A DNA stretch of 64,000 nucleotides from Octopus bimaculoides (GCF_001194135.2 NC_068985.1:25295254-25359253), one strand, 5' to 3'. Shown: positions 13,335 through 64,000, counted from the stretch's first letter. Notes: generated by a model not told the origin, from the sequence alone. Numbers and translations: made by a program.

Positions 13335-13568
13335 ATGTACCGCATTAGCAGGACGTTTTTCAAATTTCCTGTGCGTATCACGCACCAGCGGCAGGCATGG
13401 ACTACTCTCCACAACCATCAATCCAAGACTTCAAATTCCATCCCAAAGTCAAATCGGATTAACTATGGTACCCAAGCAGCTGCAGAACCATTCCTTAATG
13501 GGAGCTCGTCTTCCTACTTGGAAGAAATGTATTCTGCTTGGCAGAAAGATCCGAACAGTGTACATAAG
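13335..13568 (+). CDS. OGDH: OGDH first coding exon (78 codons), including a mitochondrial targeting peptide-like N-terminus
   Basis: ACC-ATG at 13335. An R/K/S/T-rich, acid-free N-terminus is followed by [31 protein letters not shown]. Donor AAG|GTAAGT at 13568/13569, phase 0. Confidence 0.96.
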
Positions 13569-26500: not shown

Positions 26501-29500
26501 TCTGTAAAGCAGTTGGTGTTAGGAAGGGAGTCTTGGTTGTAGAAACTGCAGATCTTTGGCTCACCCACTCCAGTTGGGCCATCCAACCCATGCTATGGAA
26601 AACCTGTTAAATGATGCTGATAATGATGATTAAATACATATACTTCATGAGTGAAAGCATTTTTATTGGTCTGTGGTCCACTTTGTTTTAGCTATTTTTT
26701 CCAATTTTCAAATATTAACCTAATATTCTACAAGAATCACTTTATCATTGTTTTAACATCCACTGTTCTATGTTTGTATTTGTTGAAGCAGATTTTCTAT
26801 GGTTGGATGCCAATGTCATCAACTCTTACCTGTTTCCAAGTAGGCTAATATTTCCCCTAATCCTTTCAAACATGACCAGTGCAATAGTCAGACATATTTT
26901 CACAGAAGATTGCAAGTGAAGGACACCGTTTGTATGACAGTGTTTACTATTAGCAAGATGTCAGGAAAATGAGGCTTGAACTGTGCTTGCGCACTCACAC
27001 ATGCACCCAAGAAGCTTCATTCGGTTTCCATCTATTAAAACCACTCAAAGGGCTTGGGACTATAATAGAAAATTGTCGAAAATGCTGCACAGCAGACTGA
27101 CTCTGAAACCATGTGGTTGTGAAGTTAATTCTTAGCCACATAACCATACCTGCACTTATGTATATATGTTATTGGCACACACTCTACTGGTTGCAAATTT
27201 TATTTATGGGGCCTTGGAAACTTTTATAATTGTATAATCAAGTGAGCCTCTCGGGATTAATTTGAGAATATCAATCTACACAAAATACAAGTTTGGTTTG
27301 TGTGTAAAGCAAGTTGAATTGCGGAATTCTAAAGCTTAGATAAGACTGAAGAATTGTTGTGCTATTTAAACATTTACAACCAGTTATATTGGATAAATGG
27401 ATACCAGGACTTGTTTAGGTTGAAATTCAGTATATTCTAGACGAGCTAGGTACCTTAAATGAGCTGTTGAAACTTCAAGTTGCATAGGGCCAAATCAAAC
27501 TGTTTTAAATAATAGTTAGTTCTAGATAACAATTTTACAAAATTGAAAAAATTCATGCCGACAACAAAGAAGTAGAAATTACTTAGAATGTTGGTCCTGT
27601 GCATGGTATAGGGAAAAAAAAAACTTTGTTCCTTTAGTTTTATTTGTAAAGAAAAATGTCAATAACAACTTTATGGAATGAAGTTAAAGTAAACATGGTA
27701 TGATTATTTTTTACCCAAATTTTTGGTTGCAGATTTATTTCCTTTATTTGATGTTAGTCTTGTCTCTTCTGCACCTGATTTATATTACTATTAGTTATTT
27801 ATTCTCAGAATTTGTGAATTTTGTCACTTAGCTGAATAAATTTTCATTATTAGTTTAAAGAACTGGTATATACTCTGCCACTTACTCTATGATAAGTTAT
27901 AATACTTTTCTTTGGATAATTTTAAGAACATTTGTGATATATGCATACTTAATTTATGAAAACTTTTTCTTTCCATATCTAGTCTTGGGATGTGTATTTT
28001 CGAAATACAGCAAGGGGAGTTAGTTCTGCCTACATACGTCCACCTACATTAGGTGGAGCTCCAGTACCCACCAGTACAGAGATGGTGCCTGCTGCAGCTA
28101 TGCCCAGTGAGAAGATTATTGAACATCATCTCTCCGTGCAGTCGATTATCCGGTCTTATCAGGTGAGATTAATTTGTGGTTGATTTGTGCTTGTTTCTGC
28201 TTTTAAATGATGTAGAGTAGATAATTTGTTATCATCATCATCATCGTCAGAATAAAGCATTAATTGGTAACTTTTAAAATATGTTGGTTACTTTAATGTT
28301 TCTTTGTAAGAGTAGAGAGAGATGTTAATTTTTCCTTTGTTCATTGAGAACTTTTTCTTTTATTTAATTGAGAAATATATAACTTCAATCATTATGATAG
28401 TTAATTTAATAATATTTTATATACTTCACTCATTTCTAAAGCTTTAATTTGTAAAATTTAATTGTAAAGTTTTAAGTTAGCAGCTACATGCATATTTTGG
28501 TTTAAATCAGTCTTATAAAATTATAAAATCAATATTTCAAATGTTTCTCTTTTATTGTGTTGCATTTTTATTGCATTGTGATTAGCCAGTGCCATATCTG
28601 AGTTTGAAGAAAATTGCATTCATATCTGTTTTCTTTTTGATAACAGGTGATGATTGCTATTTTCTTGGAGTGGATAATTTTTATTTGATTTTAAAATAAT
28701 TGTTTTCGCATAAACACCTAGGAACATAACAAAAACCAACCATTTATTTTTCAGTTATTTCTACTAGAAACTTCTCTTAATTCAGCAAAACAAATATTTT
28801 CAGTTTTACTCATGCTTTTTAACTTTGTGATTTGTGATTATTAATGATCCTGATCAAATGTTTAGGTCCAATGTTTTATTGCAACAATTGTATATTTATA
28901 TCATTAACCAAAGTCTCTATTGACTGTTTTCTCCTCTGTTTTAAAAAAAATTGCTAGTCATAATTGAAATTCTTTGTTTTTGTCCCTAAAGAAATTTTCT
29001 TAATCTAGTTGTTGGAACTGTAAAATGGATAGTTAGCTTCCATTGTAAGAGTGAAAAATAGTCAGGAAATTGAAATATAATGAAGTTTCTTTATTTGTAT
29101 GGTTGTTAATGAAAGGCCTTGCTGTAGTAGAGACAAATTTCAAACAGGAATGTAGCTAAATGTTTTGATTGGACACGTGGGGAAAGAGAAGAGATACTGA
29201 GATTTGCTAAGATATATAATGTTAAGCTCAAGGCCTGAAATTTTGTGGGGAGGGTGTTAGTCGATTCTATCATCCCCAGTGCTCAACTGGTATTTATTTT
29301 ATTTTGTTGACTCTGAAAGGATGAAAGGTAATGTCAACTTCAGCAGAATTTGAACTCAGGATGTAAAGCCAGAAGAAATGCTGCAAAGTATTTTTTCCAG
29401 TGTGCTAACAATTCTGCCAGCCTGCTGCCTTGATAAGCTATATAATACTGAGAAATGTTTTCAAACACGCTGAAAAGAGCTAATCAGCTCAGATTTAGAA

Positions 29501-32500: not shown

Positions 32501-35500
32501 TTAAATATAACTTAAATTTAGAATCAACCAAGAATAGTATCTAGAAAGAAACTTTCTCTTATAGAATGATTATTTTTTAACCTTTATGATAATGATGATT
32601 AAAATTGCTATTTGATCTCAACTGCTATTCACTCATTTCTCATTATAGTTTTTCATATTAAGCAATAAGTTCTAATTTCACTTACAAATCATCCCAACTC
32701 ATTAATTTCGTTTAATAATGTCCATATGGAAATTGAATAAAATAACGGGAAGGGATTATCTGTAACCACTTATAGTATCTTTAATAAAAACTTTTACTTC
32801 ACTTGAGTTTTTTGTTCAAGTCTTCTGATATTTTTACTTGGAATAGCTGTTGATTACAATCATTTAAAATACACTTTAAAGTTGTAGTGTTTTTAAATTT
32901 GGTTATTAGCATTCTGGACCATATGTGAAAGAAAGTTGTCTTATTAAGAAGCCTTCTTATTTAAAAAGGGATATTCTAAATGTTAGTATGGCATATTGAT
33001 ATTAAAGGTCATATTTAGAATGCCAGTCAAACAGTGAAGTTGGACTAAGAATGACACACCAAGCATATCTGCATACCTAATGTACTGGAAAATTTAGTTT
33101 TGGCTTACAGCTTCTCAAAGAAAAAATATCTCACCAACACCCTTTGGAACTGTTCACAATAAAACCCTTCCTTTATCATCATCATTGTCATTGCTTAACA
33201 TCCGCTTTCCATGCTGACATGGGTTGGACGGCTTGACTGAGGGCTGGCAAGCTGGGAGGCAGCACCAGGCTCAATCTGATTTGCCCTTCCAAATGACAAC
33301 CACTCTGCAAGTGTAGTGGGTGCTTTTTATGTGCCACCCGAATGGGAGCCAAGTCAGGTGGCACTGGCATCAGCCACACTTGAATGGTGCTTTTTATGTG
33401 CATTCCAGGTGGCACTAGCATCAGTCATGCCTGAATGCTGCTTTTCATGTGCCAGTCAGGCAACACTGGCATCGGTCACACTTGAACGTTGCTCTTTACA
33501 TGTCACCGGCATGGATGCCAGTCAGGTGGCACTGGCATCGGCTACACTTGAATGGTGCTTTTTATGTGTCACTGGCACAGGTGCTAGTCAGATGGCACTG
33601 ACATCATCCTTGGCAACGATTTCTCTTGGTTCAACACATCTTCACAAGTGCAGCATATTACCTAATGATTGAAGGGTACTTTTAAATGGACCAGTTATGC
33701 TACACTAGCATCATCCACAGCTACCATCTCACTTGATTTGCCAGGTCTTCTCAAGCACAGCATATCTCCAAAGATCTCGGTTGCTTGTCATTACCTCTGT
33801 TTGGCCCAACATTTGAAGGTTGTGCTCCACCACCTCATCCCAAGTCTTCCTGGGTCTACCTCTTCCACAGGTTCCCTCCACTGTTAGGGTGTGATACTTC
33901 TTCACACAGCTGTCCTCATCTGTACATAACATATGACCACACCAGTGCAGTCGTCTCTCTTGCACACCACATCTGATGCTTCTTATGCTTAACTTTTCTC
34001 TTAGGGCACTTACACTCTGTCATGTGTGTGCACACTGACATTACACATCCAGCAGAGCATACTTGCTTCATTTCTTTGAAGCATACACATATCCTCAGCA
34101 GTCATAGCCCATATTTCACTACCGTGTAGCATGGCTGTTTACACACGGGCATTATACAGTTTACCTTTCACTCTGAGCGAGAGGTCCTTTGTTACCAGCA
34201 GAAGTAGGAGCTCTCTGAACTTTGCCCAAGCTATTCTTATTCTGGCAGCTACGCTCTCAGAGCATTCACCCCTACTACTCACTTGGTCACCTAGGTAATG
34301 TATAGAAAAACTCAGTTTGTATGATTTCTTTTTGTATGGGCAATTAGGATATTTATTTTGGAGGTTTCAGTAGGGAGTCTATCACATTGTATCTATCTAG
34401 TCTGCTTTGGTACCTTTCCTCTTTCAACTTTATATCCTTATTGAGCCTCTCCCCATGTTTCACAATCAAATTCTCAAAATTGTGTGGGTATCTAAGCAAC
34501 TATGGAGAAAGTGTACCTTGAGGCTCATATTAGCACACACACTTCTGAAGTATTGAGCATCTTTTGGTTTTATGAACATAAATTTTTTAAAAAAATCTTT
34601 TGTAGAGCAGTGCAACCATGTATCATTATAACTTATATTTTAGGACACCAGGACTATATTTCAGGACAAGTGGTCAAAAGTTTATTCTCAAACTAATATT
34701 TTATGGTAATATATAAAGCTGTTACTTATAATTTTCTATTAGTTCTTTTGAGATGACAATTATTTTGATTCTAGTACTTGAGTGTTGTTTATTTTATTGG
34801 CCATGGAAGGATAAAAGGCAAAGTCAACCCAGAAGGATTTGAAGTATATACTGCATGGCAGTTTGTCTGTTGCTCTATTGATTTTGCTCTAATTATAATA
34901 AATACATGAATTTAAAAGTAAAACAATGTTTATCAGCAGAATGATGTCTGAACTTTGAAAATCCATCATGTACGTAAATGAAACTGTACATAACTAAAAC
35001 AAGTTTTATAGGTTGTAAAGATGTTGATATGAGAGACATCCCACATATAACACTTTTTGCTGAAGTACTTTTAGATATCTCAAGAACAATCTGAGTCAAG
35101 TCCTCTATAAGATTATTACCTTATTTTTTTACTATTAACCTGTTTATTTGAAATATGAAAAATTGTGACTTGTTAACCTATAATTTATATAAGAGGAATC
35201 TAGATTTGACTATATTTCAATTGTGTACATCTAGTTTTTGATTATTTCATTTTTATTGAGTAGGATCGACGACTTTGCTTTATTCTCAACATATACAAAT
35301 GGAATGTTCTTTTGAATTGCTATGTTCATCTTTTTTCTTTCAAAGCATTGCATTTCAAACAGTTTGGTTACCGTTCTGTGTCAAGTGCTATATATAAATC
35401 TGTGGGATGTACTCAGTGTATATCTTGGTTACAATATATGAAGGAGATTAATGTGAAGCAATGAAATTTTAGAAAACAAACTATCAGCAGTGTTAAGTTT

Positions 35501-38500
35501 TTTTTTTTCATATTTTATTGGTGTCTAAATTTTAAATGTTTATAATTTTCTTTACACTTGTCACTTAGACCATATGAAATTCATTTATGAAAAAAAAGAA
35601 AAGAGATAGATTCCAAAGTAAATCTTTTATGATTGAAGATTGCTTCTGATTTTCTTGCATAATTTGATGCAGTCTAAAACAACTGGAAGTTGAAATTTAG
35701 GTTTATAGTTGAATATCTCTGGGCCACAGATCTGCTGTTTCCCCACCCTGCCTTTTCTTTAGCTACTATGACTTCTACCCCTTGGAGCTAGTTGCATTCA
35801 GGCCTATCCAACTCACATGTCTCCCTATTCTTTTTGCCTCCCTTTTCCCCTTCCTCTCAAGCCTTGCATTAACCACTACTTCTCCCAGTCCTATGTCCCC
35901 AGCACATTAGTCCTTTGAATTTTCCCAGTAGCCATCAACTTTTAGCTGCTCAAGATGAGCAGCTACTATGTTAATTTCGCTGGTCCCAGAGAGTCTGTGA
36001 GGGCTTCTTTAAGACCAACTCATTAAAAAAATTCACTAGATATTTAGTTTTGATAGTATACTACAGAAATATTCCCAATATTCGTTTGTTTTTGTTTCAG
36101 AATTTATGAAGAACCAGAAAAATTTAATCAGTGGCTGGATTGATATATTTTGTTTGTTTGTTGTCGATAGCATTTCTTAACTCTTAACAGTATGTCGGAC
36201 TTTTTCCTGTGAAAGTCAAACTTGCATGTTATTTTTGAATTTTCCATGAAAGTTTTATTTTCCCAGTTTTTCAGCTACAATGTTTGTCAAGCATATTTGA
36301 TTGTCCTTGTGTGAGGGAACTTTTCAAATACATGCACAATATCATCAGGATATACAGTGTTTAATGTAGGACCTCATCTTTGTAAAGAGGCAGATACCAT
36401 GCCAATGGTTGTAGACTGTGTATTAGTATACTGATGTGTTTCACTTTTGAGAAGTTGTTTAGCATGATGAAACCATATATTTGTTGTGTGTGTAGTGTTA
36501 TTATTTGGATGAGTTTCTATTAGCTATTTAGTGAACGTCTTAGTTTTAGCTGCTAGTAACAAAATTGCTCATTGTGATCAAGCAACAATATTTTTCAGTT
36601 TTGCAATAAATTGAAACTTGTTTGTGGAACAGTTGTCATTGCTGATCTGATATGTTTATTTCATTAAACTTAAGTGATGTTAAGGTGAAACTTTCACTCA
36701 GTGTTAAAGTTTCAAATTATTGTAGACACTGATGAAATGCTGAATAAATGAGGACTGATTCCTTTATTGCATTTAAGTGTTATTTACTGAAATTTGATAT
36801 TCGTTGAATTTCATACATGCAATATAGTGGACAAACTCTTCATAGAAGAACTCATTCAATTTGAGTAAGATAGTCTTACTCAGTCTTTAGATTTAGTGCT
36901 TATGTCTTTTAAAATGCACATTTTCAAGTGCTAAAACATTGTTTTAAGCATTAACAATATTGATGTCTTTATCTTCTGTTGCATTTAGTGTAAAAGGTGG
37001 CAAAGATTCATTAATGCACTTTTTGAATAGAAAATTTTAAATGCAATCTAGTAGTTGATGAAACTATAAGGCTAAATCTGCCTTAATGTTTTTAAGAAAT
37101 ACTGTGACCAACATTGGTGTGCTAAATAATTTAAGAGAGGTACTATTTTTTTTTTGTAGTGCAATTTTTACTGTGTAATTTTTACTGTGTAATTTTTACA
37201 TTGACCTATATCATACTTGAGGTCTCTGAAACCAATACAACACTGAAATGACATCCTGTTTTTCACAACATAAGTGTTTATCTATTATCTGTACTTTTGC
37301 AAGATTTCTACCTCATAAAAAAACAGAAACTCTTAGCTTGGATTGGTTGAGATTTTCCCAATGTTTTTATATTCTATTTAGTGATATTCTTACAATAATT
37401 CAGATTATTTATTTTTGTCATCAAATGTATCTCCCTCCTTATTAACTTGCATAACTCTTAAAAACTGTAAATATTGGGTCATCCCACAAATTATGTGTTT
37501 TTTTTAATACTTTTATTTTTCAAAATTAAGATAAACAAAGTTCTTATACCCCCCCTTCATTTTCTACAACGCTCTTCTATCTATCTGGTAGACTTGTAGG
37601 GTCACACATTCTCTCTTGCAAAGTTTGTGAGGAACCTATTGATCCAGTTTGCTGACTTTTTTCATGGTATGCAGGTGAATGGTTGAATAACCAAATCCAA
37701 GCTTCTCTGCTGGTTCCTCAACAGTTACAGTGGGATTTTGTTCCACCAGGGTTTGTAGGACGGCTTCATCAAGCTCAACAGATTTTCCAGGACGAGCCTC
37801 ATCATCTAGGCTGTAGTTTCCGGCTCAGAGTTTCCTTGCACTTTCCGTTGCGTTGTTGCCTTCATTGAGCTTATAAAGCAAAACATGCCGAATATACTCC
37901 TTTGTCACTTCCATTATAGCTTTAAAAAAAATAACTGTTAAAATCGAACTGCACTGTTCAAAACTTGCACTAAGAATAAGTACAAGGTAAAATTACCACC
38001 TGTTTTTATAGCAAGTTGATGCAGGTAGTTTATCCTGTCCCCCTCCAACTTTCAGTTCATGCAGTTGGAAACAACGCATTATTTATGGGATGACCCAATA
38101 TATTATATGGAATATTTTGTCAAACTTACTCTTGACATGTATAATATGTATGTTCTTACAAATATGCATATATGCACACACATACACACACACACTGTTT
38201 ATTTAAAATAAACAAAAAACCATAGTTTATACTTTTGTTATCTATTAAAAGGAGGAGAGCTAAATACTTGGTTCCTTACACCATATTCTGTAGATAAAAC
38301 TGTATGTCTGTTCGTTTTATCTTTCCTTTTCAAACAGATTCGTGGCCATAATGTAGCTAAATTGGATCCTTTAGGAATTGCTTCTGCAGATTTAGATTCT
38401 GAGACTCCACCAGAGCTAATTCTGACAAACTATGGATTGGGTATGTATTGAGAGCCACTGTAGGATATGTAACAATTTTTTTGGTTACAATTTTCAAATG

Positions 38501-41500
38501 TTTCTTTCTTACATTACCTCCACATTGAATTCCTCAACTGATACTGCTGTAAAAAAAAAAAAAAATAGTTGCAATATATTCTAAATGAAAATATTGCTAA
38601 TGATAATTTCAAATATTGTTTTATGCATTTAAATAATAATAATAGTAATCATCATTATTCAATGTTGATGATAATAAAATAATCATGCTGGCATGGGCTG
38701 GACTGTTTGACAGGATCCAACGTAGTGTGTTAGTAGAGTGAGAGCTGTATGGTGGTGGAGAAATAGAGATAATTTGGTGGCTCAGAGGGATAATTGGTGT
38801 AAAATATGGGTAGAGATAATAGTTTAAGGATGAAGAATGGATATCAAGTGAAATGTTTAGAGAGATGATGGGCAGTGGGAGTATCTTGAAGAGGATGTTG
38901 GGCAAAGGGCCTAGTTGTGCATAAACTGGCACTCTGCTATGGTGATGAGAGTTCCAGTTGGTCCAATCAATGGAACAGCCTGAAATTAATGTGCAAGTAG
39001 CTATCTCTCCTTGGACATGCAAACCCTTAACACACTTCTCACAGAGATTCAGTGTAACAAGGCTGACCATTTGAATTACAGGTACAGTTGATTTTTGCCA
39101 GGTGGGTGGACTGGAGCAATGTGAAATAATGTGTCTTGCTGAAGGACACAATGCACTGCTAGTAACCAAATTCACTACCTTATGATCATGAGACAAATAG
39201 TCTAATCACTAAGCCATAAGCTTTCAGAACTTAGTTTTGCAGATTTGGGTGGGTCTTCTTGAGACCTGCATATCAGCACTCGTCCCAGTCCTTTATCACC
39301 ACTTCATTCTCTGTCTTCCTGGATTCTTCTGTGAACTCTGATCCTCATACTGCACGACATTTGCAATTCTCTTCCTTTCTACCTCACCTTTAACCAAATA
39401 TACTTGTCACCTAGCTGTCCTTTTAGTCATTTGGTAATGCTGCCTGCTACCACCTTTCTTCTAGGTTTTCCAAGCCTGTTTCTTACCCCTTATGAATCAC
39501 ATAACAAAAATAGGATATACTCTATATTGCTGGAAATATGAGTTTTGTATCCCACCATTCCTTTATTAGAGGACAGTCTTTTTCCTAGTTGGTAGTAGAA
39601 TTTAAATGTCTTTTGTGCAGTGCCCAAGCGGGGTCTTGTTTTATATAAGGAGTCATATTGTTCTCCCTCATGTACTGTTACGCTGATATCTTGTATAGGT
39701 AAATATTGACAAAACTTTAAAAATTACATTCTGGTTTTGATACTGGAGATACAAAGGCTCACTAATGGTTTCTGTTTCGGTTAATCCGGGGTAGCTTCTT
39801 AATTCTCATTGTTATATTTACTGCAAAAATGCTGAATTTGGTTCAGATATTAAAGATATTTAAAAGTCTGTTTACATTTTACCTATAGGTTTCTTCCAAG
39901 AAGTTTCAAAGAGAAACTCCATCCTAACTGTTATAGGAGGCACAAGCACTTTCACACACATGTATACATGCGATGGACACTTCTGCTTTCCAAATTCACT
40001 CAACAAGGCTTCAGTTGGCCTGAGGCTATAGCAGAAGACACTTGCCCAAGGTACCACTTAGTGGGACTGAATCCCAAACCATGTGATTGAGAAGCAAGCT
40101 TCCTAACCACACAGCCTATTTAAACATTTTTAACTCCATTGTGTTTCCAGAATAAATTCAGTTTTGCTGCCATAATTGCTATCACTATTGGAAATAGATA
40201 TATTTCATTCCTTTATTCCAACACATGTTTTTAATTTGAATAGCCTTTAAATTTGTTATTACTTCTGAATGTAAAGCTGGTATCTAATTGTTTCAAATAT
40301 GGAAAAAAGTTTTCGAATAGATAACAATGTCAGAAGAAATATCAAAAAAATATTTAGAATTTTTATGTTTCTACCTGTGACAGGCCTTCCATCCTTACCA
40401 CTGCCTCTTTAGAAATAAACTTGATTCATTCCCTTTGCAGTTACTGTTTAAGGAAATCCTAATCTGAGTCTGCTGTCACTATATATGTATATGTTTCACG
40501 AGTACATATATCTGAATGTATGTATGTGTGTGTATTTGTACAGACATACACACACACATACATTGCCAATGCTCTCTATGGTTATTGCTGTGTATCCCCT
40601 TTTGTCCACCTATTAGTGCTAGCTAGGCAGTTCCCATCACCTGTGCTTGACCCTGATCGTGACAATCCATCCAAATCATGACAGCATAGAAAGTGAACAT
40701 ACAATAATGGTGTTGTACAGCAAGTGTCTGTCTAGTTAAATTAGTATAGTAACAATTTTTATGTTGATATGAATAAGTATTTATGTGCAGTATCAAACAG
40801 GCTGGTAATTTAGGATGGTGAAAAATTTTGGATACTGTCAAATGCGAAAGTGTTAAGTAGTAATGTATAAAATTGTGGTATGGTTATTGCCAATTTTAGT
40901 TTTACATTCGTATTGATCTATTCATAAGATTACACAGTTAATGGCAGTCCTTTGAAATTTTTGGTTGATATTAATTACTGTGCATATCGAGTTTGTATCT
41001 TTATTGTATCTATATAAACTTTATATATTTTCATTTGGAAGTTTTTGTTTTTACTGCAGTAAACAGTGCAAGGATTCATACAATGTAATGTAAATTATTT
41101 AACAAATGGTTTTATTCCAGGGAATAATAAAGGCTGAATAAAAGATCCTACCACCTATTTACAGAATTTTTGATTTGTAAAGATATTCTTTGTAATTTCA
41201 CATTCAAAACTTGAAATAATGGTTAAGTAAAACTTGCGGATGAAATTGTTAAATAGTAATTGACTCCAAATACATATTACTTTTATGCTAAAGTTACTTC
41301 TATTTAAATTTTTCTTTTTTGCTTCTGCGCAGCTTACTTCTTTTTTAAAAACTTGGTTTCATTGAAAAGAATATACTTTTATAAAAATAAGCATTAATTT
41401 TTTACTAAAGGAATTTGTATAAGAAATTATTGAAATATTATAATCAAAAATTTAATAATAGGTAGTAATATCTTTTATACACACATATATTTGTGCATGT

Positions 41501-44500
41501 GTGTTTCAGGCCTACAATTATAAAAATACTAATTATTTGTTTTTCTTTCAGTGCTTTGAAGAAATTCAATTTGCATCTGACAGTTGAGATGAGTTTTCAG
41601 GGATCTGGATCGGTACTTTCATTCACTACTAGTTCCTAATTTGTGTCTTTTTTTTGGTTTCTCTCACACTAGATCCGCGGTCATGAGCTAGCTGCAGTTG
41701 ATCCACTTGGCTTAGATCAGCGCTCAGATGGTTCATCTATGTCCGAGATTTTAATCAACCATTACGACCTTGGTAAGGCTAGGTGTCTGATGCTGCTAAT
41801 GGTATAATTCTACTTGTCAATGTTGTCACCAGTTTTCTAAGTCTTAATATTTCATTATTCTATTCTTTTGCTAATGAAAAGATATTCTGTTTTCTCATTT
41901 TCTTTCTCTCTGTTTTAATTTCCTCTGTTCTTTCATTCTTTAAATTTGGTTGGTTTTGTGCTTATCTTCTTACATGTAACTTCTATAATTTTTTAACTAA
42001 TTCATTTGATCACATCACCCCTCTCCAGTAGTCTGAATTTTTTTGTCAAAGTCTATTGTTCACATTACTAGATTTACTAGACTTCAGAGTATCACTGGAA
42101 ACAATATTCCATTTTATTAATTATTGAGCATTTTGTTAATTTGGGAAATGTTAGTGACATTGAAATAGATAATTGTTAGCGGTTGCACTACGTCTTTTGG
42201 TGTTCCCCTTCCCATTTCCTTCTTAATGAAGCTTATTATTGTTTCCTAAACATTCGTATTCTTATCACAGTCTATTTCAGTCCTTCCAACACTTTTTTAG
42301 GTCCAGATGTTGCAAACTAGCTTAAATCTTGCAACAGTACTTTAAATTAATTACTTTGGTTTCTCATTTAAGTCCTGTAGGAAAATTCTGTATTGTGTGT
42401 GCTTGTGTATTTGTGTGCATAGATGTTTTAATTTTGGCAGTAGTTTAATGCTTACTAAACATTTTGATTTGTTTTTCTAAACTTTAAGTGGATATTTATT
42501 TATTTTTTATATTTGTTCAACGCAGGAGTTTTTCACATCAGTATCTGCTTTTGTTAAATGAGTAAAATTGCCATTATTTCACACTTTAATATGTGCACAC
42601 ACAATCAAGTGTGTGCATGCGTAGTCTTTTCAGAAGTTGTTTTGTCTTGGTTTTCCTTGAAAATGAGAATCGGAGTATATTTTTAGAGCATGTTACTGCA
42701 ATTATTTTAGCATGTTGCTTCATTTACATGTTTTCTTTTATTGATATGAGTAAGTCAATTTGCTCATAACCACTTTGTTTAGATGTTTATATCATGTATT
42801 TATTTTCTAGCTAAATTTATCTTTTTTTTTCTTTAATGTGTTTTATGTGTATTGCCAGTAACACTGCTAGTGTAGCAATGCCTTCAATAATTGTATGTTG
42901 TTGATAAAATAAAGTTTAACTAGTTATTGCACATTTTTCATAGCTTCCCAATCAAGGCTACTCTGAGGTTCAGCAACAATTTGAATTTTAATCTACAGCT
43001 TGTTGGTTATTAAATCTATTAAAAGTAAAGTTGTTGCTTAACCCCAGGTTAATGTTGATTGAATAGCAACAAAAGTTGTGCTTATAAGATCTTGCAAAAA
43101 CCCATGGCTTCAGTTTGCAAATCATTTTATGCTTAAGAAGCACTGACAGTTTTGATAGATTTTTCATGTGTGACAAATATTACATGTAAACTACTTGAAA
43201 TCTTGTGTATGTTTTCTGTTATAAAGCTATTAGTCTGTATTATGAATGCAAGTTAAAATTTATGTTGCTGATCCAACTGAAAAGGAATAAAAATAAATAA
43301 AATTCAGCAGTGACCTAATTTTAGTTTTTGATTTTTGTGATCTAGGTTCTTTTTTCTTCTTTTTTTTCTTACACCAATGACCTACCGACATGCTTGAAAA
43401 TTTTAAATTTATGCATTACTTTGAATAATTGGCTTTTCTGATAAGGCAGTAGTTACTGACAGTCTTTTATCTTTTGAATGTGTGATAAAGACAGAAATGA
43501 AAGAAAAAAAAAAAAACAGAAAATGATTTTATCACGTTGAAACTAAATAGCAAATAAATTACTAGTTTTATACAGCTTGGTCAAGTTATTTGAAAGTTTT
43601 TGGCTCTCGGTCAACAGATTTCTGGCTTTTTGGTTTGTGTGTGTGTGTTACTGGTTTGGTAGAGAAAGTGCTTGTACTCATAGACTTTCCACAGTCCCTT
43701 AGGACCTGTGATACTGAGACAGTAAAGATTCCTCCTGTTGAACTGCAAGTTGATGGCTGCTAGAAAAACATGGGCTGGAAAGAATGTCCTAGAGGGAAGA
43801 GATTGGGTGAAGTAGTTAGTAGGGAGCCTGGTGTGCTGGGCACAATATAGGAGATGGGAGATGAGTAAATTGGAAGTGTTTTAGTAGAGTTCGCAGGGGA
43901 TCAACCAGCTTTCAGGAGTATATACCACTATAAGTGGTAGAAAAACAGAAAAAAGAAAGAGCTCATTCATGAGTCAGAAATTTCTGTTATGATTTTTCTT
44001 TGATACACCTTTTTCCATTTATTTCACCAAGCAGAACCCCAAATGTAGTGTAAGTACTCTAATGCTTCACTCTTTCATTGCTATATTTCTAACTGAAGTG
44101 TGGTTTAATTACATTCTAGTAAGTAGGAATTTAGACAGCTTTGATGGCATAGCTATACTTTTTAAAAAAAAAATATTAACCTACCAGAGTTGTTTGAAAC
44201 ACAATTTAAAAGGTTCATTAATCTATTATTGAAATTTTGCTTCAAAAATGCAGGCAAGTACAGGTTAAAATCTGTGAAATGTAAAGTTAGATTTTGTTAA
44301 AGTATCACCAGAATCATTACACCATGTGACAAAATGGTTGGCGGCATTTTGTTCGACTGCTTACATTCTGAGTCAAAAATTTGCCTCAGTAGAGTTTCAT
44401 CTCAAGGCAGTGCTCCAGCATGGCCACAGTCAAATGACTGAAGCAAGTAAAAGAATATAGTTATCAATAAACATATATATTGCTAAAATATTATGTATAC

Positions 44501-45433
44501 ACTTTATATGTATAGCTTAAATATTTTATATATGCCCTGATTTTGTCCAGTTTTTCCCCCCTGTTCAGATTCTTCATAGCTATCTATTTTATTATATGGA
44601 GCACTTATAGGAGCTAACAAGAGTAAATAGGTTTTAAGTTAACAGGTTTTGACTGGTTAGATCTGGTTTCTTCTGGAATTTTAGAACAGAAATATTGTAA
44701 AAGTTTCCCCTCCATTCTCTTTTTGAAAATTATTTCACTACTATCAGAAATTGAAATGTCAGTACCCTCTACATTTATATTTAATGCATTGAAAAATCGT
44801 TCATATTCAGAGGCACTGTTATTTAAATCTGAAAGTTATGTAATTTTTAAAATGAGTAGAATATTATAAAAAGTAAAATAAAGGATTTGGGAGAAATAGC
44901 TAAAAATTTCAGGGAACAGTATTGGATAATGTACAAGTGTTTATATCTAGTAAAACCACATTATCATTGACTCAGACATGATATATGCCAGTATTCTGAT
45001 TTATTTATGAACATGTAAATCCAGGCTGTTTTGAGTACTTTGATACTGTATGGTCACATGTGGGAGTGCTTTGGCAACATAGGATGACATGTAGTTTTAG
45101 TTAGTTGATAACAAAAAGGTTAATGTCAAGTATGTATTTATACTTGAGAAATTTTAAAATTTTACATATGCTTAAGTAATGGTTTGTACTACAAAAGTTT
45201 TCTGGTATATTTGTAGCATACTTCGAGGTAAACTTTTTTTTATACATACCAAAGCCATTGTTATTTTGACAATTATAAATAAATGCCTTTTTTTTTTCTT
45301 TGGAAAGATTGAAGTGGGGGAAAAAATCTAGCTGGCTGGTTTCAAATCTTTTTTGATTCTCATCAGAGATAGACTACCATTTCATCTGCTCATGGAGTGA
45401 AATATAGCTAATATCTATCTATCTATCTATCTA

Positions 45434-45479
<46 letters not shown>

Positions 45480-48400
45480 GTCACTAAATCTAGTGTTTGC
45501 TTAACTGATTGGTTTTATTTGTATAAATAGTGATATGTTAGAGACTAATTTAAATTAAATAATTATCTACCAAACAGCATTTCAATAATGGAATATTTTT
45601 CTCTATGGTATTCTTTTAACAGTTATTCATATCATTTTGAGTAAATTATTTTTTGTAGCTAAAGAGTGCAGTGAATGTGCCAGGAAAGCTAGCATTAATT
45701 TTTTTGTGCATCTTGTTGCTTGATTTAATGTTTTTTGTAGATAAAACTAAGGACAGGTCATAGAGATAGGAAAACCTGCCTTGGGAGAGAGCCGAAATGA
45801 AATTGTTTCTTCAGTGACTGAACAGACTTGTTCTCCCTCTGACTTCCTTTCAAAAATATACATCAATATTAAAACCATCTGTTTTCTAATAAGACGGAAT
45901 GATGCAAAGTAAAGTGATCTATTGAATTAAACAATCATCCTTATCTTCGTCGTTTTTGCCTATTTTCATGTTGGTATGGGTTCAATGAGTAATCATAGTT
46001 TGGGTCAGTTCTCATTTGATGGGTTATGGAATCACATACATGCATTCTATTTTTGACTTGGTAAGAGTTAGCTATGCAGGTAACGGTTAATGATGGGAAA
46101 GGTATTCAGTTGTAAAGCAATACCTCGATAATGTGGTCATTTGGCCTATGCTAGCATAGAGAACAAATGTAAAATGAATTTCTTAGCACTTTATAGTGTG
46201 TGCTGGGGGGCAATTTGTCATGGTATCAATTCTAGAAGCTATGTTCTCAACAGGATATGACTAGGGTCCTCATGAACCTTCATCTTGTTTCATTTGCCAA
46301 CCACTTTACAGTGTGTACATTTGTGATACCAGCACTAGTGAGGTACCATAATGAAACTAGTGGATTATCTTGCGAGACAAGAGACATTATACATTGTTTC
46401 CATTTGTTTTGGGCAACATGACCTGACCAATGGAGTGGATAGAAGAGAAAATGAATTAGGAGCAATGGGGAGAGAGAGTAATGAGAGAGACACACTATTG
46501 ATTGCTACATATTTGCTGGTGAGAGAGAAAGAGCATCTGTAATGGATTGTCATAAAAATGGTCTATAGAAAGATACTGTGATGGCTGTTAAAAACCAGAC
46601 ACTTGAAGAGGTTGGCAGTATAAGTGACGCTAGCTAACGAGAGTGTGAAAGTGAATAGCAATAAGAAAGTTATGGACATCTGTAAAAGAGTGACTTGAGG
46701 GAGTATTTGTATAATGTTCCTATGCTAGTGCAGTTCTCTTTTATGCACAGTATATCTGATTCCTCTTATATCAAGTTCCCCCTCCCCATCATCTTCGCAC
46801 ACTAACATTACACATCCAACAGAGCATGCCTGCTTCATTTTTTTTCTGGTCTTTGCATATAAAGTGCATTGCTCATGAATCCTCTGCAGTCAAGGAACAT
46901 GCATCATTGCATTTCATATACATGAATTAGACAATCTACTTTGCACTCTGAGGAGAAAATCCTTTGTTGCTAATCGTAGGTAATAGCTCCCTGACTTTTT
47001 TCTGACTTAATCTTGCTCTGGCTATTATGCTTCCAAAGCACCCACTTCAACTTCTAATTAGTTCATCTAATTAACAAAGGATATCCATTACTTCTAGGAA
47101 GCCTTCCAGGCATTTGAATCTTTTTCTGGTCAGCTCTTAGTACTTGTTGCACCTGCACTCCTATCACAATGTCTGTCTTCTGTGTTAGCCTACCTGTGCC
47201 TTATTACATTGTATGGTGTTCCTATTTCTTTTCCGTAGATCAAGCTTGGTTATTTCCCTGACAGTAACAGAGTCCTGTCTTTTTTTTTTTTTTTTANNNN
47301 NNNNNNGTTTCCTTAGTTAACCCTGAGGTCAGTCAATTCTAAGTTTTGCTCCTCTGTGTGGAATTGTTTTCAATCTGCTATAGCTTCTGCTCTGAAAACT
47401 TGGACTGTCTATGCTGATCATAGACAGTCAGTTTTAAACTTTTATACTTTGTGAGACTGTAACAAGCAAAGGTGTTGGGGCTGAAGATGGAGTTGTATCT
47501 AATGTTAAATTTATCACAGAACTCATTACTGATTCTCACCTTCATGACTGCATCTCTGTACATGGTTTGTACAGCCATTTACCCTTAGTGACTCATTCAT
47601 CCACCTCTAGCTTCCTCAGTGACTTCCACATTACAGAGCAGTATGAAACCTGATCAAAAACTTTCTCCAAGTTGTTGAATGTTTAGGCATAACAACTTAC
47701 GTCTTGGCTAAGAACTTCTGCAGGTGTCTCAGTAGGAATATAGTATCATTAAAACAAAGATGATTTAAATCTGAGGCTAATTCTCTTCCCAATCAATTGT
47801 GCAATAACTCTTTCTGTAACTTCCATAACCTAGTCCACCACTTTGATATCTCTTATATCTGCTCTTTCATAATCTGCTACCCTTGTAACTGGCAGTCATT
47901 GAATATAACACTTTCCTTTAGTTAACTGACTAGCATGTGCCAAATTCCAATAGACAGTCTAATCATCTTGGGGTGGGGGTCTAGCTGTTTCCTTCTCTTT
48001 AATTACCTTAGTGTTCTTAATTTGAATCAATTACTCCTCTAATCTATTTGGAGAAGGCCGTCTTCCGTATATTACCTTCATTCAACAACCTTGCAGTATC
48101 GTATTTTTATGACTATTTCTTTTTGCCATCAACAAGAGCAGTTGTACCATTATCATTCTGTACACAGTTCTCAACAACATCTCTGGCATTTTGCATTGCA
48201 ACTTGAAATACGTCATACACATGAACAATGACAAACCCCTTACTTTCAGCTTTTCTCTTTGCTGAAGCATCTAACTTCTTTTCTAGCCACTCAATATTGC
48301 TCTTTTCTACCCTTTTTCTTCCAGCTTTCAGGCTTTAACCTTTGTACTCTTACAAGTCTATTCCTCCACCAGTTCACCTTCTTTTGGGTCTGAGATGTTG

Positions 48401-51400
48401 CATCAGTCACAGATCTGCTCTTTTGCTGTCGGTAGATTCTTCTTTTGAGAGCAATTGTGGTTAGGGTGTCAGTTCATACTTCTACGAACACACTACTTGT
48501 TGGTAACTCTTTCAACTTCCATGTCCTCCTCCAAATCTCTATTGCTTTGGAGTTTGTCTAACTCTTACTCTACAGTCACTGATCACTTGTAAAGTTTAAA
48601 CTTGAGCTTTTATGGTCTATAACAATGTCTTAACCACTGCAACAGCCATAACACAAAGAAATATGTATGCATGGGTAATAAAATAAATTTATTATATAAA
48701 CTGAATGAATCGCAAATGAGGAACTAAGTACTTGGAGAAAAGCTATACTGAAGAGACAATCCTTTAAGTTCATGTTGGTTTCAGTGACTGCTAGTGTGTA
48801 TGTATTATGAGTTCTAGTTGTCTTTAATTAATGTTTGTTGTGAAAATAAAATTGTTCCTGCAGCTTCTCAAGCAGTGTTCTATGAGTAATGAGATAGTAA
48901 AAATGTAGGGTTGAAGTACTAACCACTAAAAAGTGCTATGCATTTAATGCAACTGTGTGAAGATTAACAGAGGCATCTGCTCTACTGATTACTATTTGAT
49001 TGCATTGCAATTGTAATTTTGAAACATTACAAAATCCGCAGAACAATTCTTTGCTATATCTATGTTCTTTATTCCAAATTTGTTCAGAATAATTTAGATG
49101 GGTGATTGAATATCGCAAGTATGTTTTAAAGATGTTAATCTTGTCATTAAAAGTGTATAATTCATTGAAAGAAAGTTGGATTGCAAACAATTTTATACTT
49201 AATTTATTTTCTATGTAGTATAGCATATGCTGACTATTGATGTAGAAATGTCTACTTTCAACTAATTGTTTAAAGTTTAAAAAAATTTTTTTTTATAAGT
49301 TTTGATCACTCCAAGAATTTCTTTTAATTGATCTATTGCATGTTGGCTGGATTTAATGTTTATAGTTTAAATATCAGCTAATTTCAAGAAAAGGTTTCAG
49401 ACTAATGATATATTAAATGTACCTATTTCAAAAGTTTTGTGTGTATTCAGCTGCACTTTTATTTGTTTAACATTTAAAGATATTTATAAATATATTGTAT
49501 CACTATGTATAAAGATATTGGGCACATATTTCATGATCAATGTTCAAGCTTGTCTAATTACAATGTTTATGATAGGCTAATGTCTGATAAAACTATGTAT
49601 TTTAAAATGTAAAGTAGAAAGAGCTTAATTTACTTTTTAGATTTATATAAATGAATATAATGTAGATTTTAAATTGACTTTTGATTTTGTAGATGAAATA
49701 TGTGCCTTTTCCGTTTTTTTTTTTTTTTTTTTTTTGTATGCGATGGTTATATTCCAGTTGGTTCCTATTGTTTTCTGGTAGATCTAGTTTTTTTTATCTT
49801 AATTCCTAGGTAACATGTATTTAGATGTTATCCTCAGTAATGATGGAAAAAATACTTGCAACAAATTTGAAGTTGTGCTTAGCAGCTAGTCTTATCTTGT
49901 TGACTATTTCAACTCTGATTAACAATATAGTTTTATGGAAGAGGTCTGATGTTGAAAAATTATTGTTTTATTTTGCAATTTTCTTTATTTGCATTATATT
50001 AAAGAGTATATTCATATTTTGTTTTCATGATGTTACTTTTATCTAGATAAAGCTGCAATTATTTACAAAATTTGCAGAAATCAGAAAATTAAGTAAATAT
50101 TTTATATTATTTTGTTATTATAGTCTATTCTTGTTGTAATGGAATAATTTTGAATAATTGATTTAACATCCTATAAATAAGAACTGCTGTAAGCTATTCT
50201 ATCATCAAGTAAAGATAGATTTTGCAGGAATTCATGAAGTTAATAACTAAAGTGGTCAGCCATTAACTGGTATGATTTCATGTTAGAAATTCTTTTGTAA
50301 TTTGTTTTGTGTCTTCGATTGTTTCTAGAAAATGAAAAGAATCAAAATTTGGTTGTCTCAGGTAAGGTAATATTGGGAATGCAACTGGATTTAAGTAATG
50401 TTGTTTTAATTGTTAAAAGCTAATTAAGATAGTGAAACAATTCAAATAGTTACCCAAGAAACTTTAAATGGTTATGAATTAAAATATTTAGTTTTGTAGC
50501 TAGATTATTCATTTCTATTTGAATACTCTGAAATCATCTCCAAATCTGTTTTCAAATATTTAAAAGTAGGTATTTTAGCCTATTTCAGTGCTCCACAGCC
50601 TTTTTCCATTTGTCGTACTCTTATATTCTTTTCAAAATTTGATGTTACATCTGAACTAAAAATATAACTAAAAGTATAGGGAAAAAAATTCTGCAGCACT
50701 CCTAGCATCTTCTTGTGGCACACCAGTGTTCTTGCAGCATACTGACTGGTTGCAGAGCATTGGCCTATTTTCTGTTTTGTAAAAATGTTAATCATTTGAA
50801 TTATGATGAATTTTTGTTTAAAAATGTTCTTTTTACCTTAGTAATGTGGCAAAAATTGTTAAATTTCAAATTGAACTTAGAAATCAAGTTATTTTTATCA
50901 GCTATATTTTAATAATTTTTCATCTAACAAAAAAGAAAAGAAAAATCTTGCTTCTTACCATTTATTGGTAGAAATTTAGATGACTTCTCTGTTAGTTTTT
51001 ATTATCTTAATGTATTTCTTGGCTTGTATAAATTATACAAATATTAGGATAACATCTGCTATGCATTTCTTGTCACCTGTTGCTTTGTATATCTTCTATA
51101 TATTCCTCTTCTCTCTTGCTTTCGATATTTGTGTGTTGTAGATTTTATTTTATTTACTATTTAACTATCAAGTTAATCATTGTGATGAAATAAGATTCTA
51201 CTGTTCAAAAGATAATTAACTTTTTGGTGAGAGATTTGAATCACTTCAGTTGTTCCTTAGCATTATCCTTTCGTGTATGCCTTTTTCATAAATATTTGTA
51301 TTTTAGTTGCTGTGCTTTTTATTTATTTATTTTTTTTACTGTATATTATGTCACAAAAAAAAAAAAATTGGATTAACATTTTTCGGTTGCATGCTTCTTG

Positions 51401-54400
51401 TATTGATAATGAATAGTTTGCAACTATCTTTCTGTTAGATGAGCCTGATCTTGATAAAGTCTTTAGACTTCCACACACTACTTATATTGGCGGAGATCAA
51501 ACTGAGCTTCCATTACGTGAAATCATCAAGAGATTAGAGGTATGTAAATCTTCTGATATAACTTCCTCCAGTTACTTACAGAATGTCTATCTATGATATT
51601 GGATGAAATATATTTTGTGTATTCTTTTCTTTTTGTTTTAAGTTTGGTATACAGTTTTCATTAATGTGTTAACAGAAGCAATATTTTAAAACCCACCATT
51701 CAATGCCTAGAATGTTAAACTATTTTTCCTCAGGAAATTTACTGCCGACAGATAGGTATTGAGTTTATGTTTATCAACAATCTTGAGCAGACCGATTGGA
51801 TTCGTCGCAAATTCGAGGTACCTAACATCATGCAGTTTGATGCCGAAGAGAAGAGGCTTATCCTAGCAAGACTTATTCGATCAACTCGGTGAGTGTGATT
51901 AAATTCTGTATCTCTACTGAGTGTGATCATTTGGTTGGCAAAATCAATCTAATTTCAGTTCCATAGATTAAGGAAAATTACCTTTTTAATTTTATACACA
52001 AGTGCCCCAGAAGCTCACATTTGGTCTTCGTTATTTTAGATAATGTATAAATCTGTTAAAAAACAACTTTATTAGAATAATAATCTTCTTGAGAGATGGT
52101 TAACTAACCTCCCTATGCTATACTCACAACATAGAAATCTATTATGTATGCCTTCTCCATTTTCTTACATTCCATTCACTTCTTTATCTTCTGTTGCTTC
52201 ATCCTAAAGATGGTCTTAGGAAGTGGGTGGAAGGGAAAAATAGAACCAAAGCATTGTAGCAACTAGATGATGGGGCCAAACCACACAAACATATATATGT
52301 ATATCACTCATTCTCACCTCACTCTTCTGTCTACAATATTATTCAAGTGCTGTTAGTAATGAGAGCAGAATTTGTTATTACTACCATATCATATCTTAAT
52401 CTCACCAGTTTTAGAGAATCTGTGAGTCTGATGTTCATAGTCATTACCCCTTCTAATAACAGCTATGAGATGAAGAGAAAAACGAAAAGAACCTGGAGAA
52501 GTTGGCAATCCTGGTTTTGGCATTATTAGGAAGTAAAGCTTAAAACTGGGCTTAGGTATACATTTAAGAACTTTTCTGGTGATTAACATACACAACACAC
52601 TTATTTAAAATAAATATAATCATATTGTGAGTGTTAACCTTGTTCCACGCATTCTTTCCTAGTTTAGAACTTCTATTTTAAAAATATTTAAAAATATTGG
52701 TTTTTAAAATTGCTTTGTGATTCTTGCCTTTTAGATTTGAAGATTTTCTTGCACGAAAATGGTCATCTGAGAAACGTTTCGGTATTGAAGGCTGTGAAGT
52801 TCTGATTCCAGCAATGAAGGCTGTCATTGATTCATGCAGTTCACTTGGTGTGGATAGTTTTGTTATTGGCATGCCTCACAGGTTAGTAACTTTCACTCTT
52901 AAGCCCTGTCATATATTTGTTTTTTTAACTCAAACCTTCAAAATAGAATTTGTCTGAAGCAATTTTAGCTTATTTGAAGGATTTATAAAATAAGTAGAGA
53001 AATACTTCTCATGACTTCAATTTCGTTCAGAATTTTATTAAAAAAAAAATATTAAGACACAGTAAATACAGTCTTAGATGATATAACTGTTACCTGGAGC
53101 TAAGATATATGTTTCCTGGTTCTTTAGAACTTAATAAATGTAAGTTAAAATTAAAATACACATTAGATTTGGTGTATGCAGTTTGTCTTTAGATTTCATT
53201 CTCATCCTCACATGAAGATTAGCCTTATGCATCACTTCCATGCATTAAATATTTATCCTAGCTTAACCTTTTTCTGATCAGAATTGGGTTTCATTGCATG
53301 ATTATGTTTCTTGAAACCATAGAATCAGTGCTGAGCACCCCCACCTCACTCCTCCACACAGACACACACAAAGCAAAGTACCTTCAATGACAGTTAACAC
53401 ACAGCCAATGAATCGACCTCTTCTTCACATCTTGTTGTCTTGACGATCTTGTTACAGTTTTATGGTGCCCAGTCTTTTGTCATTGAAAGGGATTAACTGC
53501 AGGTTTTGGTTAAAAGTTGTTACATAACTTCATCAGATTTAGCATTCAGCATGCAGGATATAAATGTCTTGAACTGAATTGTGCATGAAATGCTGCTAAC
53601 AGATTCACAAGATTTACTGCCTGTTGTTATTTAGCCTGCAGGTCAGTCATAAATGAGCAAATTCAAGGTAAAGAGCTTTTCAGTTCTGACCAGCGCCTCT
53701 TATTATCAGGCACTGTGCATCACCCAGAACTACATTTTCTAAAGTTGTAGGGTGTAATTTGAGTTTACTACTGTTAATTTTAAGGGAAATAAGTCTAGGA
53801 AGAAATCTTATAAAAATGCTAGTTAGAGAGAAAAATAGATTGTACAATTTTTATGAAGGCTCATCTGAATTGTGATGGGTTGTTGCATGAACTTAGGTAG
53901 AAGTATAGAATCAATACTTGGCACTAGAAAAGACAAAAGTTAGAATTTAATGGTGAACCAGATGGTTAAAGTTGATATATTTCTTTATATTTTTATATTC
54001 TCTACTATAAAAATATCCTCAACATTTACTGTTAAGTTCTCATTTGTTTCTCTGTCTTAAATGATCAAAAACCAAATTATGACTTTTTTAAATGTTTTTT
54101 AAACATTTGTAAATAATGTTAATATTTTAAATCCCATGTTATTTTCTTAATTACGTTTTTTTTTTCTCTTTTCAGGGGTCGTTTGAATGTACTTGCAAAT
54201 GTTTGCAGGAAGCCTCTGGAACAGATTATTTGCCAGTTTGATTCTAAGCTGGAACCATCTGATGAGGGATCTGGAGATGTAAAATATCACTTAGGCATGT
54301 GCCATGAGCGCCTGAATAGAGTAACCAACAAGAACATAAAATTGTCTGTTGTTGCAAACCCCTCACATTTGGAAGCAGTCAATCCTGTTGTTCAGGGAAA

Positions 54401-55068
54401 AACAAAAGCTGAACAATTTTACCAAGGAGATAAGGATGGCAAAAGAGTATGAACAAATTATTAATTTTAGACATTTACTATAAAAATTTTGTTGCTGTAT
54501 GTTCTATTTTACTAATTCTGGATCATGACTAATGGGGCTGGTTTCTGTAGACCAGCCAATTTAGATTGCTGTGAAAATTTTCAGTACATTTCATGGTTAA
54601 AAAACATGATATTTACAAAAGTCTGTACATGAACCAGAAAAGTTTTTTTAAGAGAATTTGTTGATGNNNNNNNNNNNNNNNNNNNNNNNNNNNNNNNNNN
54701 NNNNNNNNNNNNNNNNNNNNNNNNNNNNNNNNNNNNNNNNNNNNNNNNNNNNNNNNNNNNNNNNNNNNNNNNNNNNNNNNNNNNNNNNNNNNNNNNNNNN
54801 NNNNNNNNNNNNNNNNNNNNNNNNNNNNNNNNNNNNNNNNNNNNNNNNNNNNNNNNNNNNNNNNNNNNNNNNNNNNNNNNNNNNNNNNNNNNNNNNNNNN
54901 NNNNNNNNNNNNNNNNNNNNNNNNNNNNNNNNNNNNNNNNNNNNNNNNNCTACAAATTTTTCTCTAAATTGATAGCGATATCGCTATCAATTTAGAGAAA
55001 AATTTGGCTGCTATTTCTGAATTCTCAGTATGTTGGAGAAGCAGGATACTGCTAATCCCTATATATTT

Positions 55069-63145: not shown

Positions 63146-64000
63146 GTGAGTTGGTCATGTGTATTTTTTTATCTGTAAAATATCCTATTGCTATTAACCA
63201 TTGGGAAAAGTGTATACTTTTGGCTGTTTGGCAGAAGAAGAAATTGCTCTCTAATGAAAGTATTTTACTATTGAATGAATTTTCATTATGATTAATGTTT
63301 TTTTTTTTTTTTTTTTTTTAATTACAAGCATGTTTATGCATGTCGATTTTGCTACTGTGTAGTTGCAGGTTGGATCTGACTAGCATTTTCAGCATTTTCT
63401 GCTATAGTTTCAGCTCATCTAAAACTTCAGCGAAAGGTTGTAGGCAAAAACATTGGAAATATATCTGCAGTCAAGCAAAATCATTATGTTGATACCTAAT
63501 CTATTTCCCTTAATGTTTATGTTTACTTCATACTCCTTCCTTTATAGATTCTATAAAATAAATACCTCACAAAACTTCTCAGAGGCAGTGCTAGAATATG
63601 ACAACAGGCCAATAACTGAACCCAATAAAAGAATATATGTGCATTTTGCTCTCTCTCTCTCTCTCTCTCTCTTTGATTTGGGTTGAATTAAAAATAATTT
63701 TACTTCTAAGGTAGTTTTTTTTTTGCTGCTGTGATCCCTTATTCCTCAACCTATATACTATAGAAAAATCATTTAAAATGCAGAATAGAAAGATAAAGAC
63801 CAATAAAAGAAATTTAAATGTTCTAAGCTACTTTTATTTATCAATAAACCCACTGCGAGTAAAGAAATGGACAGTTTTATTTACTGTTTGCTTTATGTTC
63901 CTTAATTTTTACAAAAGAACAGTTTATAATATAGATTTGAAATGGAGTAAGTTTTTGCATGTTTTTATATTTTTCCTTTTATATTTTATTCTAATATAAT

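Follow-up and report, generated by a model that had tools for sequence, protein, structure and literature searches.

How does one octopus gene supply two versions of the same short segment of 2-oxoglutarate dehydrogenase (OGDH), the enzyme of a rate-controlling step of the citric acid cycle, and what might the choice between them control? The question is raised by a 64,000-nucleotide stretch of the Octopus bimaculoides genome (GCF_001194135.2, NC_068985.1:25295254-25359253; the window, in whose coordinates all octopus positions below are given), in which the OGDH gene carries two similar exons one behind the other. We refer to them as exon A and exon B and conclude, with a probability of about 0.9, that they are a genuine mutually exclusive homologous pair. 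The identity of the gene itself is clear. Joining the window's exons, exon B among them, gives a protein of 674 residues that matches the RefSeq entry '2-oxoglutarate dehydrogenase complex component E1 isoform X2 [Octopus bimaculoides]' (P0123, 1008 amino acids) at 100% identity and 100% coverage, and RefSeq isoforms X1 and X2 both map onto the window at 100% identity by tblastn and place the start codon at 13335. The domains of the matching full-length proteins are 2-oxogl_dehyd_N, E1_dh, Transket_pyr and OxoGdeHyase_C (PF16078, PF00676, PF02779 and PF16870), and their matches to human OGDH (structures 7WGR and 8I0K) reach E = 0. The gene extends beyond the end of the window.

Both exons lie on the plus strand between the same two constitutive exons. 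Exon A (38338-38440, 103 nt) starts with ATTCGT, ends in GGATTG G and encodes 34 residues plus one base; exon B (41673-41772, 100 nt) starts with ATCCGC, ends in GACCTT G and encodes 33 residues plus one base. Their borders are supported by splice sites, frame and RefSeq mapping. Each is preceded by a pyrimidine tract and flanked by AG/GT splice sites, with an acceptor ending in caaacag and a gtatgt donor for exon A, and an acceptor ending in cacactag and a gtaagg donor for exon B, and each is entered in phase 0 and left in phase 1. An intron of 3232 nt (38441-41672) separates them. The constitutive exon upstream (27983-28162; acceptor tctag, donor CAG/gtgaga) closes in phase 0, on a codon boundary, with the residues SIIRSYQ, its last base being 28162. 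The constitutive exon downstream (51439-51539, 34 residues, placed by tblastn and frame) requires a single carried-over base, the G that either alternative exon supplies, before it continues with DEPDLDKVF.

This arrangement leaves few combinations that can be read through. Splicing in either A or B alone gives an open frame across all downstream exons tested, a check carried as far as position 54446, whereas inclusion of both exons runs into a stop at 41684 and skipping of both into a stop at 51535. Because the reading frame survives only with exactly one of the two, they have to be used in a mutually exclusive manner. The homology of the two is likewise detectable within the window, where a tblastn search with either exon's peptide finds the other exon (E = 1.5e-4 with A and 5.9e-5 with B as the query) and no further match below an E of about 1. 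A profile built on 46 exons of this type, drawn from many animals and run against all six frames of the window, recovers exon A at 1.4e-20 and exon B at 3.4e-13; its next match is at 0.59, and a third copy was not found by this search.

Most of this had been proposed in a first-pass annotation of the same DNA, and its core holds up well. The two homologous exons, 103 and 100 nt long with entry in phase 0 and exit in phase 1, were placed correctly to the base; the frame does break when both are included or both skipped, at the two stops just given; its by-eye finding of no third copy in the adjacent introns is borne out, for the whole window, by tblastn and the 46-exon profile; and its deduction that the exons must be alternatives is confirmed both by the frame and by annotated products that differ in this exon alone. 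The name it gave them, 4a/4b, fits less well. The pair is real, but the numbering is derived from mammals, and in octopus this is the third coding exon counted from the start codon at 13335.

The annotated products deserve a closer look. RefSeq isoform X1 of O. bimaculoides (XP_014777605.1, P0242, 1009 amino acids) contains exon A and isoform X2 (P0123) exon B. O. sinensis has the matching pair of isoforms X1 and X2 (XP_029636245.1 and XP_029636246.1), both of which are also deposited under O. vulgaris. In O. bimaculoides as in O. sinensis, X1 and X2 show 21 aligned differences, all of them within the alternative exon and none elsewhere. These RefSeq entries represent the same thing as the window pair; they are computed annotations that come without a description or a functional test. 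Beyond octopus, Martinez-Gomez et al. 2021 (PMC8373072) treat tandem-exon substitutions of human genes and, in the available text, give OGDH equivalents in invertebrates that include the Pacific oyster, that is, the same gene and the same class of event already in a mollusc. The exon pair is thus already known, from both octopus isoforms in RefSeq and from the mollusc OGDH pair in the available part of PMC8373072, and is not new. What we add is modest: the conservation of exon B in cephalopods, the sharing of the pair between molluscs and a nemertean, its reversed polarity, and its lack of the enforcement architecture of vertebrates.

Is exon B then a working exon, or an unused and decaying duplicate for which X2 is an annotation artefact? 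That X2 is a computed model speaks for a pseudo-exon, as does the scarcity of exon-B transcripts described below. Comparison with other octopods points the other way. In O. sinensis both exons are nucleotide-identical to the window (contig L006, exon A at 29046, exon B at 32355). Argonauta hians has an intact exon B (L007 38420-38519) 2.5 kb downstream of exon A, and relative to Octopus it differs at four synonymous sites and one nonsynonymous site, the latter a conservative I to L exchange, with both splice sites intact. Exon A differs between Octopus and Argonauta at four synonymous and no nonsynonymous sites; its peptide is the same in O. sinensis, Argonauta and the genomic contig L001, every nucleotide difference being synonymous. 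Open frame, phase and both splice sites of exon B are retained in three octopod genera, and the ratio of four synonymous substitutions to one conservative one indicates that exon B is under purifying selection. The first-pass annotation had named decay of one exon in related species as the observation that would speak against it; we find none.

Among annotated proteins of Argonauta hians we saw only an exon-A product (isoform X1), and the annotation of that species seems to lack the exon-B isoform.

The intronic surroundings of the two exons are conserved to different extents. Between Octopus and Argonauta, exon B lies in a block of 84% identity (41527-41970) that takes in 146 nt upstream (41527-41672) and about 198 nt downstream (41773-41970), and only one base differs in the first 30 nt past its donor. 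The corresponding block around exon A (38262-38473, 87% identity) takes in 76 nt upstream, with the pyrimidine tract and acceptor (38262-38337), and 33 nt downstream. Long conserved intronic flanks are the usual pattern for a regulated alternative exon.

Evidence that exon B is used in cephalopods comes from an assembled transcript. P0251, an OGDH of 1022 residues translated from a spliced Logan transcript contig (4796 nt), contains exon B alone, with two changes relative to octopus exon B. The cluster to which P0251 belongs is 86-88% identical to octopus, and its exon before the pair resembles that of contig L001; we take the source of both to be a squid- or cuttlefish-type cephalopod. L001 covers exon A and ends before the expected position of exon B, so the conservation of exon B in this lineage rests on transcript P0251. 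Other Logan contigs (P0124 and P0125 among them) carry exon A alone. Within the squid- or cuttlefish-type cluster, 44 contigs show exon-A forms and a single contig the exon-B form, a count that suggests that exon B is the minor form.

Taken with the B-type exons annotated at the same downstream position across molluscs, the retained frame and splice sites, the signs of selection, the conserved flanks of 146 and 198 nt and the B-only spliced transcript of a distant cephalopod effectively refute the idea of a pseudo-exon, to which we assign a negligible chance. Exon B is better read as a working alternative. With conserved intronic flanks far longer than those of exon A, it looks like a regulated minor form. 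Exon A, from indirect evidence, we infer to be the default, an ancestral-type sequence that prevails in assembled transcripts.

How would the choice be enforced? Each mRNA takes either A or B after the constitutive exon that closes at 28162 and before the one that opens at 51439, and the resulting isoforms X1 and X2 differ only in a stretch of about 33 residues close to the N-terminus of the catalytic core. Any transcript that includes both exons, or neither, is frameshifted and meets a stop many exon junctions before the 3' end; nonsense-mediated decay would be expected to clear such transcripts. If mis-spliced forms are removed in this way, the reading frame itself would enforce the either/or outcome.

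A more active device is conceivable. Mutually exclusive pairs elsewhere are known to be kept apart by a distant branch point, as in vertebrate OGDH, or by competing RNA pairing of the Dscam kind, both mechanisms being established (PMC7969005), and the long conserved flanks of exon B could hold such elements. The octopus locus gives either device little encouragement. According to PMC7969005 the vertebrate OGDH pair is enforced by distant branch points within a short, size-restricted intron, with an AG-exclusion zone of about 280 nt and a very long pyrimidine tract. In octopus, by contrast, the intron between A and B is 3.2 kb long and has a normal AG-exclusion zone, the nearest AG lying 40 nt before the exon B acceptor. 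With an AG this close, a branch point in the usual position is predicted. A vertebrate-style distant branch point with steric exclusion is unlikely given these two features. As to RNA pairing, pairwise duplex folding among seven conserved blocks yielded no docking and selector elements: the best z was -2.4, the duplexes were long and poor, and none went beyond shuffled controls. In a whole-intron scan with the conserved 35-nt intron-3 element, the top partners were not conserved in Argonauta, the best ones lying at non-equivalent places in the two genera. Enforcement by either of these mechanisms is therefore improbable in our estimate. The obvious place for candidate control elements of exon B is in its conserved flanks, 41527-41672 and 41773-41970.

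The 35-nt element itself (28630-28664, plus strand) lies about 470 nt into the 10-kb intron that follows 28162 and is 91% identical to Argonauta L007 17965-17999, while the adjoining intron does not align with Argonauta. It consists of a pyrimidine tract and ACAG followed by GTGATGATTGCTATTTTC, a make-up reminiscent of a recursive splice site or of one border of a very small cryptic exon.

What might the two versions do differently? The closest guide is the vertebrate gene. In vertebrates exon 4a (the LS1 form) makes OGDH Ca2+-insensitive and exon 4b (the S1 form), which carries a DADLD motif, makes it Ca2+-sensitive, so that the choice of exon sets the response of the enzyme to mitochondrial Ca2+ (Kralovicova et al. 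2021, PMC7969005). The octopus and vertebrate pairs share their position in the protein, their splice phase and their organization as tandem homologous exons used singly, and in both one exon has an ADLD-type acidic motif that the other lacks. The human E1 structures 7WGR and 8I0K cover the segment that the alternative exon encodes. The motifs themselves differ. Octopus exon A has SADLD at the vertebrate DADLD Ca2+ site, a serine replacing the first aspartate, while exon B reads DQRSDGS and has no DxDxD motif. The order of the exons also differs, since vertebrates have the motif-less 4a before the DADLD-containing 4b and octopus has the reverse, the ADLD-type exon at 38338 preceding the motif-less one at 41673. 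By analogy with vertebrates the exon switch would most likely alter the allosteric regulation of E1. That it changes the Ca2+ sensitivity of the octopus enzyme is a more tentative proposition, to which we give somewhat less than an even chance, although Ca2+ would be the leading candidate.

Several observations weigh against reading the locus as a regulated isoform switch of this kind. X2 of O. bimaculoides is a computed RefSeq model, and the sole assembled exon-B transcript that we saw comes from another cephalopod. The first motif position of exon A is a serine rather than an aspartate; according to PMC7969005, Ca2+ sensitivity is abolished when this D is replaced by A, and that paper gives the consequence of a D-to-S change as unknown. 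We found no measurement of the Ca2+ sensitivity of a molluscan OGDH in the literature. Nonsense-mediated decay as the enforcer is presumed from the frame only, and the analyses of conserved-block duplexes, of the whole intron and of the AG zone found no RNA-structure or branch-point mechanism for the choice. The either/or slot of molluscs offers a simple invertebrate system in which to study the role of a motif-less isoform.

How old is the pair? Annotated pairs of proteins that differ only in this exon occur in gastropods (Gigantopelta, Haliotis, Pomacea, Littorina, Babylonia and Physella), in bivalves (Ruditapes, Dreissena, Mya and scallops), in the nemertean Lineus and in sea stars and sea urchins, the echinoderm pairs in RefSeq or GenBank being those of Patiria, Asterias, Acanthaster, Strongylocentrotus, Lytechinus and Diadema. 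One version always stays near octopus exon A, with the pattern [TI]RGHN[VI]..LDPLGI..ADLDS..P.EL...NY.L, and the other is divergent. In many molluscs the divergent exon starts [IL]RGHH.A.LDPL and ends SHY.[LF]; octopus exon B ends NHYDL. In arthropods, the tick Ixodes has two tandem exons at this position, both without an ADLD motif, and the butterfly Leptidea has two annotated versions of the exon. The echinoderm, nemertean and arthropod pairs are like that of octopus in being tandem homologous exons in the same slot, and unlike it in that the divergent exons are dissimilar between phyla.

The genomic order of the exons is informative. Exon A lies upstream of exon B in O. sinensis, in Argonauta, in Gigantopelta (18187 and 24573), in Pomacea (7804 and 10207), in the bivalve Ruditapes (6481 and 7381) and in the nemertean Lineus (4421 and 4984). 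Patiria, a sea star and the only echinoderm whose locus was examined, has the order opposite to octopus: its divergent exon, at 12679, precedes its ADL-type exon, at 19711. The divergent exon likewise comes first in P0037, a fish gene model in which the two exons are read through together.

These comparisons show that the pair is no younger than the molluscs, because the order A then B is common to octopods, gastropods, a bivalve and a nemertean. The label 'cephalopod-type' that the first-pass annotation had attached to the gene is accordingly too narrow, the pair being present across molluscs and in a nemertean. The background it gave stands: alternative exons at this position in mammals are documented as vertebrate 4a/4b in PMC7969005, and for insects the butterfly has its two annotated versions, to which the tandem pair of the tick can be added. 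Since the A-then-B order is constant and an ending in [SN]HY is shared, we favour a single origin of the molluscan pair before the classes split. That the slot is kept across molluscs, including the active, large-brained cephalopods, suggests that the cycle has long and widely been tuned at the level of isoforms. According to PMC7969005 the mollusc Lottia has the DADLD motif without an exon duplication. The mollusc pair qualifies that statement.

A protein of the limpet Patella caerulea (P0129) carries a B-like exon (IRGHNLADLDPLGINSADLEKNPPSELSLSHYHF), which sits awkwardly with the absence of duplication reported for Lottia.

Did the octopus pair and the vertebrate pair arise from one duplication? 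The available text of PMC8373072 equates the invertebrate and human exons and dates the OGDH tandem-exon event to Bilateria, listing the Pacific oyster among its carriers. If so, a duplication in the bilaterian ancestor would have produced both pairs, and exon B would be a true orthologue of the Ca2+-insensitive 4a. Molluscs, a nemertean, echinoderms, a tick, a butterfly and vertebrates all have alternative exons in precisely this place and phase, which agrees with such an origin, and so does the RGHH.A.LDPL.I start common to many non-ADLD exons, namely vertebrate 4a and the B exons of gastropods, bivalves and sea stars. Octopus exon B, however, begins RGHE and not RGHH, and the ADLD-type exon is upstream in all mollusc loci and in the one nemertean locus examined, whereas the divergent exon is upstream in Patiria and vertebrates. 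This reversal of exon order between lophotrochozoans and deuterostomes is one modestly new point of our analysis, and it is not discussed in the available text of PMC8373072.

The reversal would be expected if the mollusc and nemertean pair had been duplicated separately from the deuterostome pair, with the acidic motif lost from one copy at least twice. We built a neighbour-joining tree with bootstrap from 46 exon peptides of about 33 residues each. In this tree the A-type exons fall loosely together and the divergent exons cluster solely within classes or phyla (bootstrap support 100% for cephalopod B, 100% for vertebrate 4a, 76% for caenogastropod B, 73% for heterodont bivalve B and 71% for echinoderm B). 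It contains no supported cross-phylum clade of divergent exons, which counts against a single origin and is in line with separate ones. Annotated proteins of Capitella and Tubulanus carry the ADLD-type exon only, as separate origins would also allow, and PMC8373072, in its available part, describes ACOX1 as a case of just this kind, with repeated origins among chordates, echinoderms and molluscs. Against this stand three considerations. A single annotated product leaves room for a second, unannotated exon. One ancient duplication whose copies diverged differently in different lineages could leave the same picture. And the tree cannot choose the number of origins, because about 33 residues hold too little signal. 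A tree of the kind that the first-pass annotation had called for is thus too poorly resolved to choose between one origin and several. The reversed polarity of lophotrochozoans and deuterostomes is a firmer observation than the tree.

On balance, we regard independent duplications and one ancient duplication with different copies diverging by lineage as having roughly equal odds. A single bilaterian duplication that makes exon B the orthologue of 4a is plausible and falls somewhat short of an even bet. Independent duplication of the same OGDH exon in lophotrochozoans and deuterostomes, with opposite polarity and perhaps once more in arthropods, comes close to an even chance without reaching it. 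If true, independent duplications would amount to convergent evolution of one metabolic isoform switch and would contradict the published single bilaterian dating.

Further exons of the gene were mapped on the plus strand. The first coding exon (13335-13568), with the start codon and residues 1-78, matches X1 and X2 at 100% identity by tblastn and ends in the donor AAG/gtaagt. Beyond the exon at 51439, constitutive exons were placed by tblastn, with borders from splice-site context, at 51734-51888, 52735-52881, 54176-54446, 55997-56125, 58035-58214, 59759-59911, 60233-60452, 62304-62454 and 63018-63147.

In several phyla an optional small exon lies between the pair and the next constitutive exon. 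It reads GHGHVI/GHCHL in Ruditapes and Mya, AATDEDINMIMKFAR in Lineus, LDKVLPAELNW in Ptychodera and DLAVFKERLRVLTVG in birds, where it corresponds to the vertebrate 'Insert'; the examples come from L005 14838-14855, L008 10893-10934 and the proteins P0295, P0015 and P0016. None is annotated in octopus, whose 9.7-kb intron 41773-51438 was not searched for one. In the gastropod Gigantopelta aegis, the intron directly downstream of the exon before the pair contains about 40 matches, mostly about 41 nt apart, to the last 36 nt or so of that exon (L002 14064-16202). These repeats encode SVQTIIRSYQ with variants and look like a tandem minisatellite derived from the exon end and donor region.

The octopus window contains N runs that mark assembly gaps at 54667-54949 (283 nt), 56660-56882 (223 nt), 11206-11215 (10 nt) and 47297-47306 (10 nt). 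All lie outside the mapped exons, and three of the four fall within OGDH introns. The intron upstream of exon A also holds a tandem repeat array with units of 51-66 nt (33355-33605), which is probably part of a repeat element.

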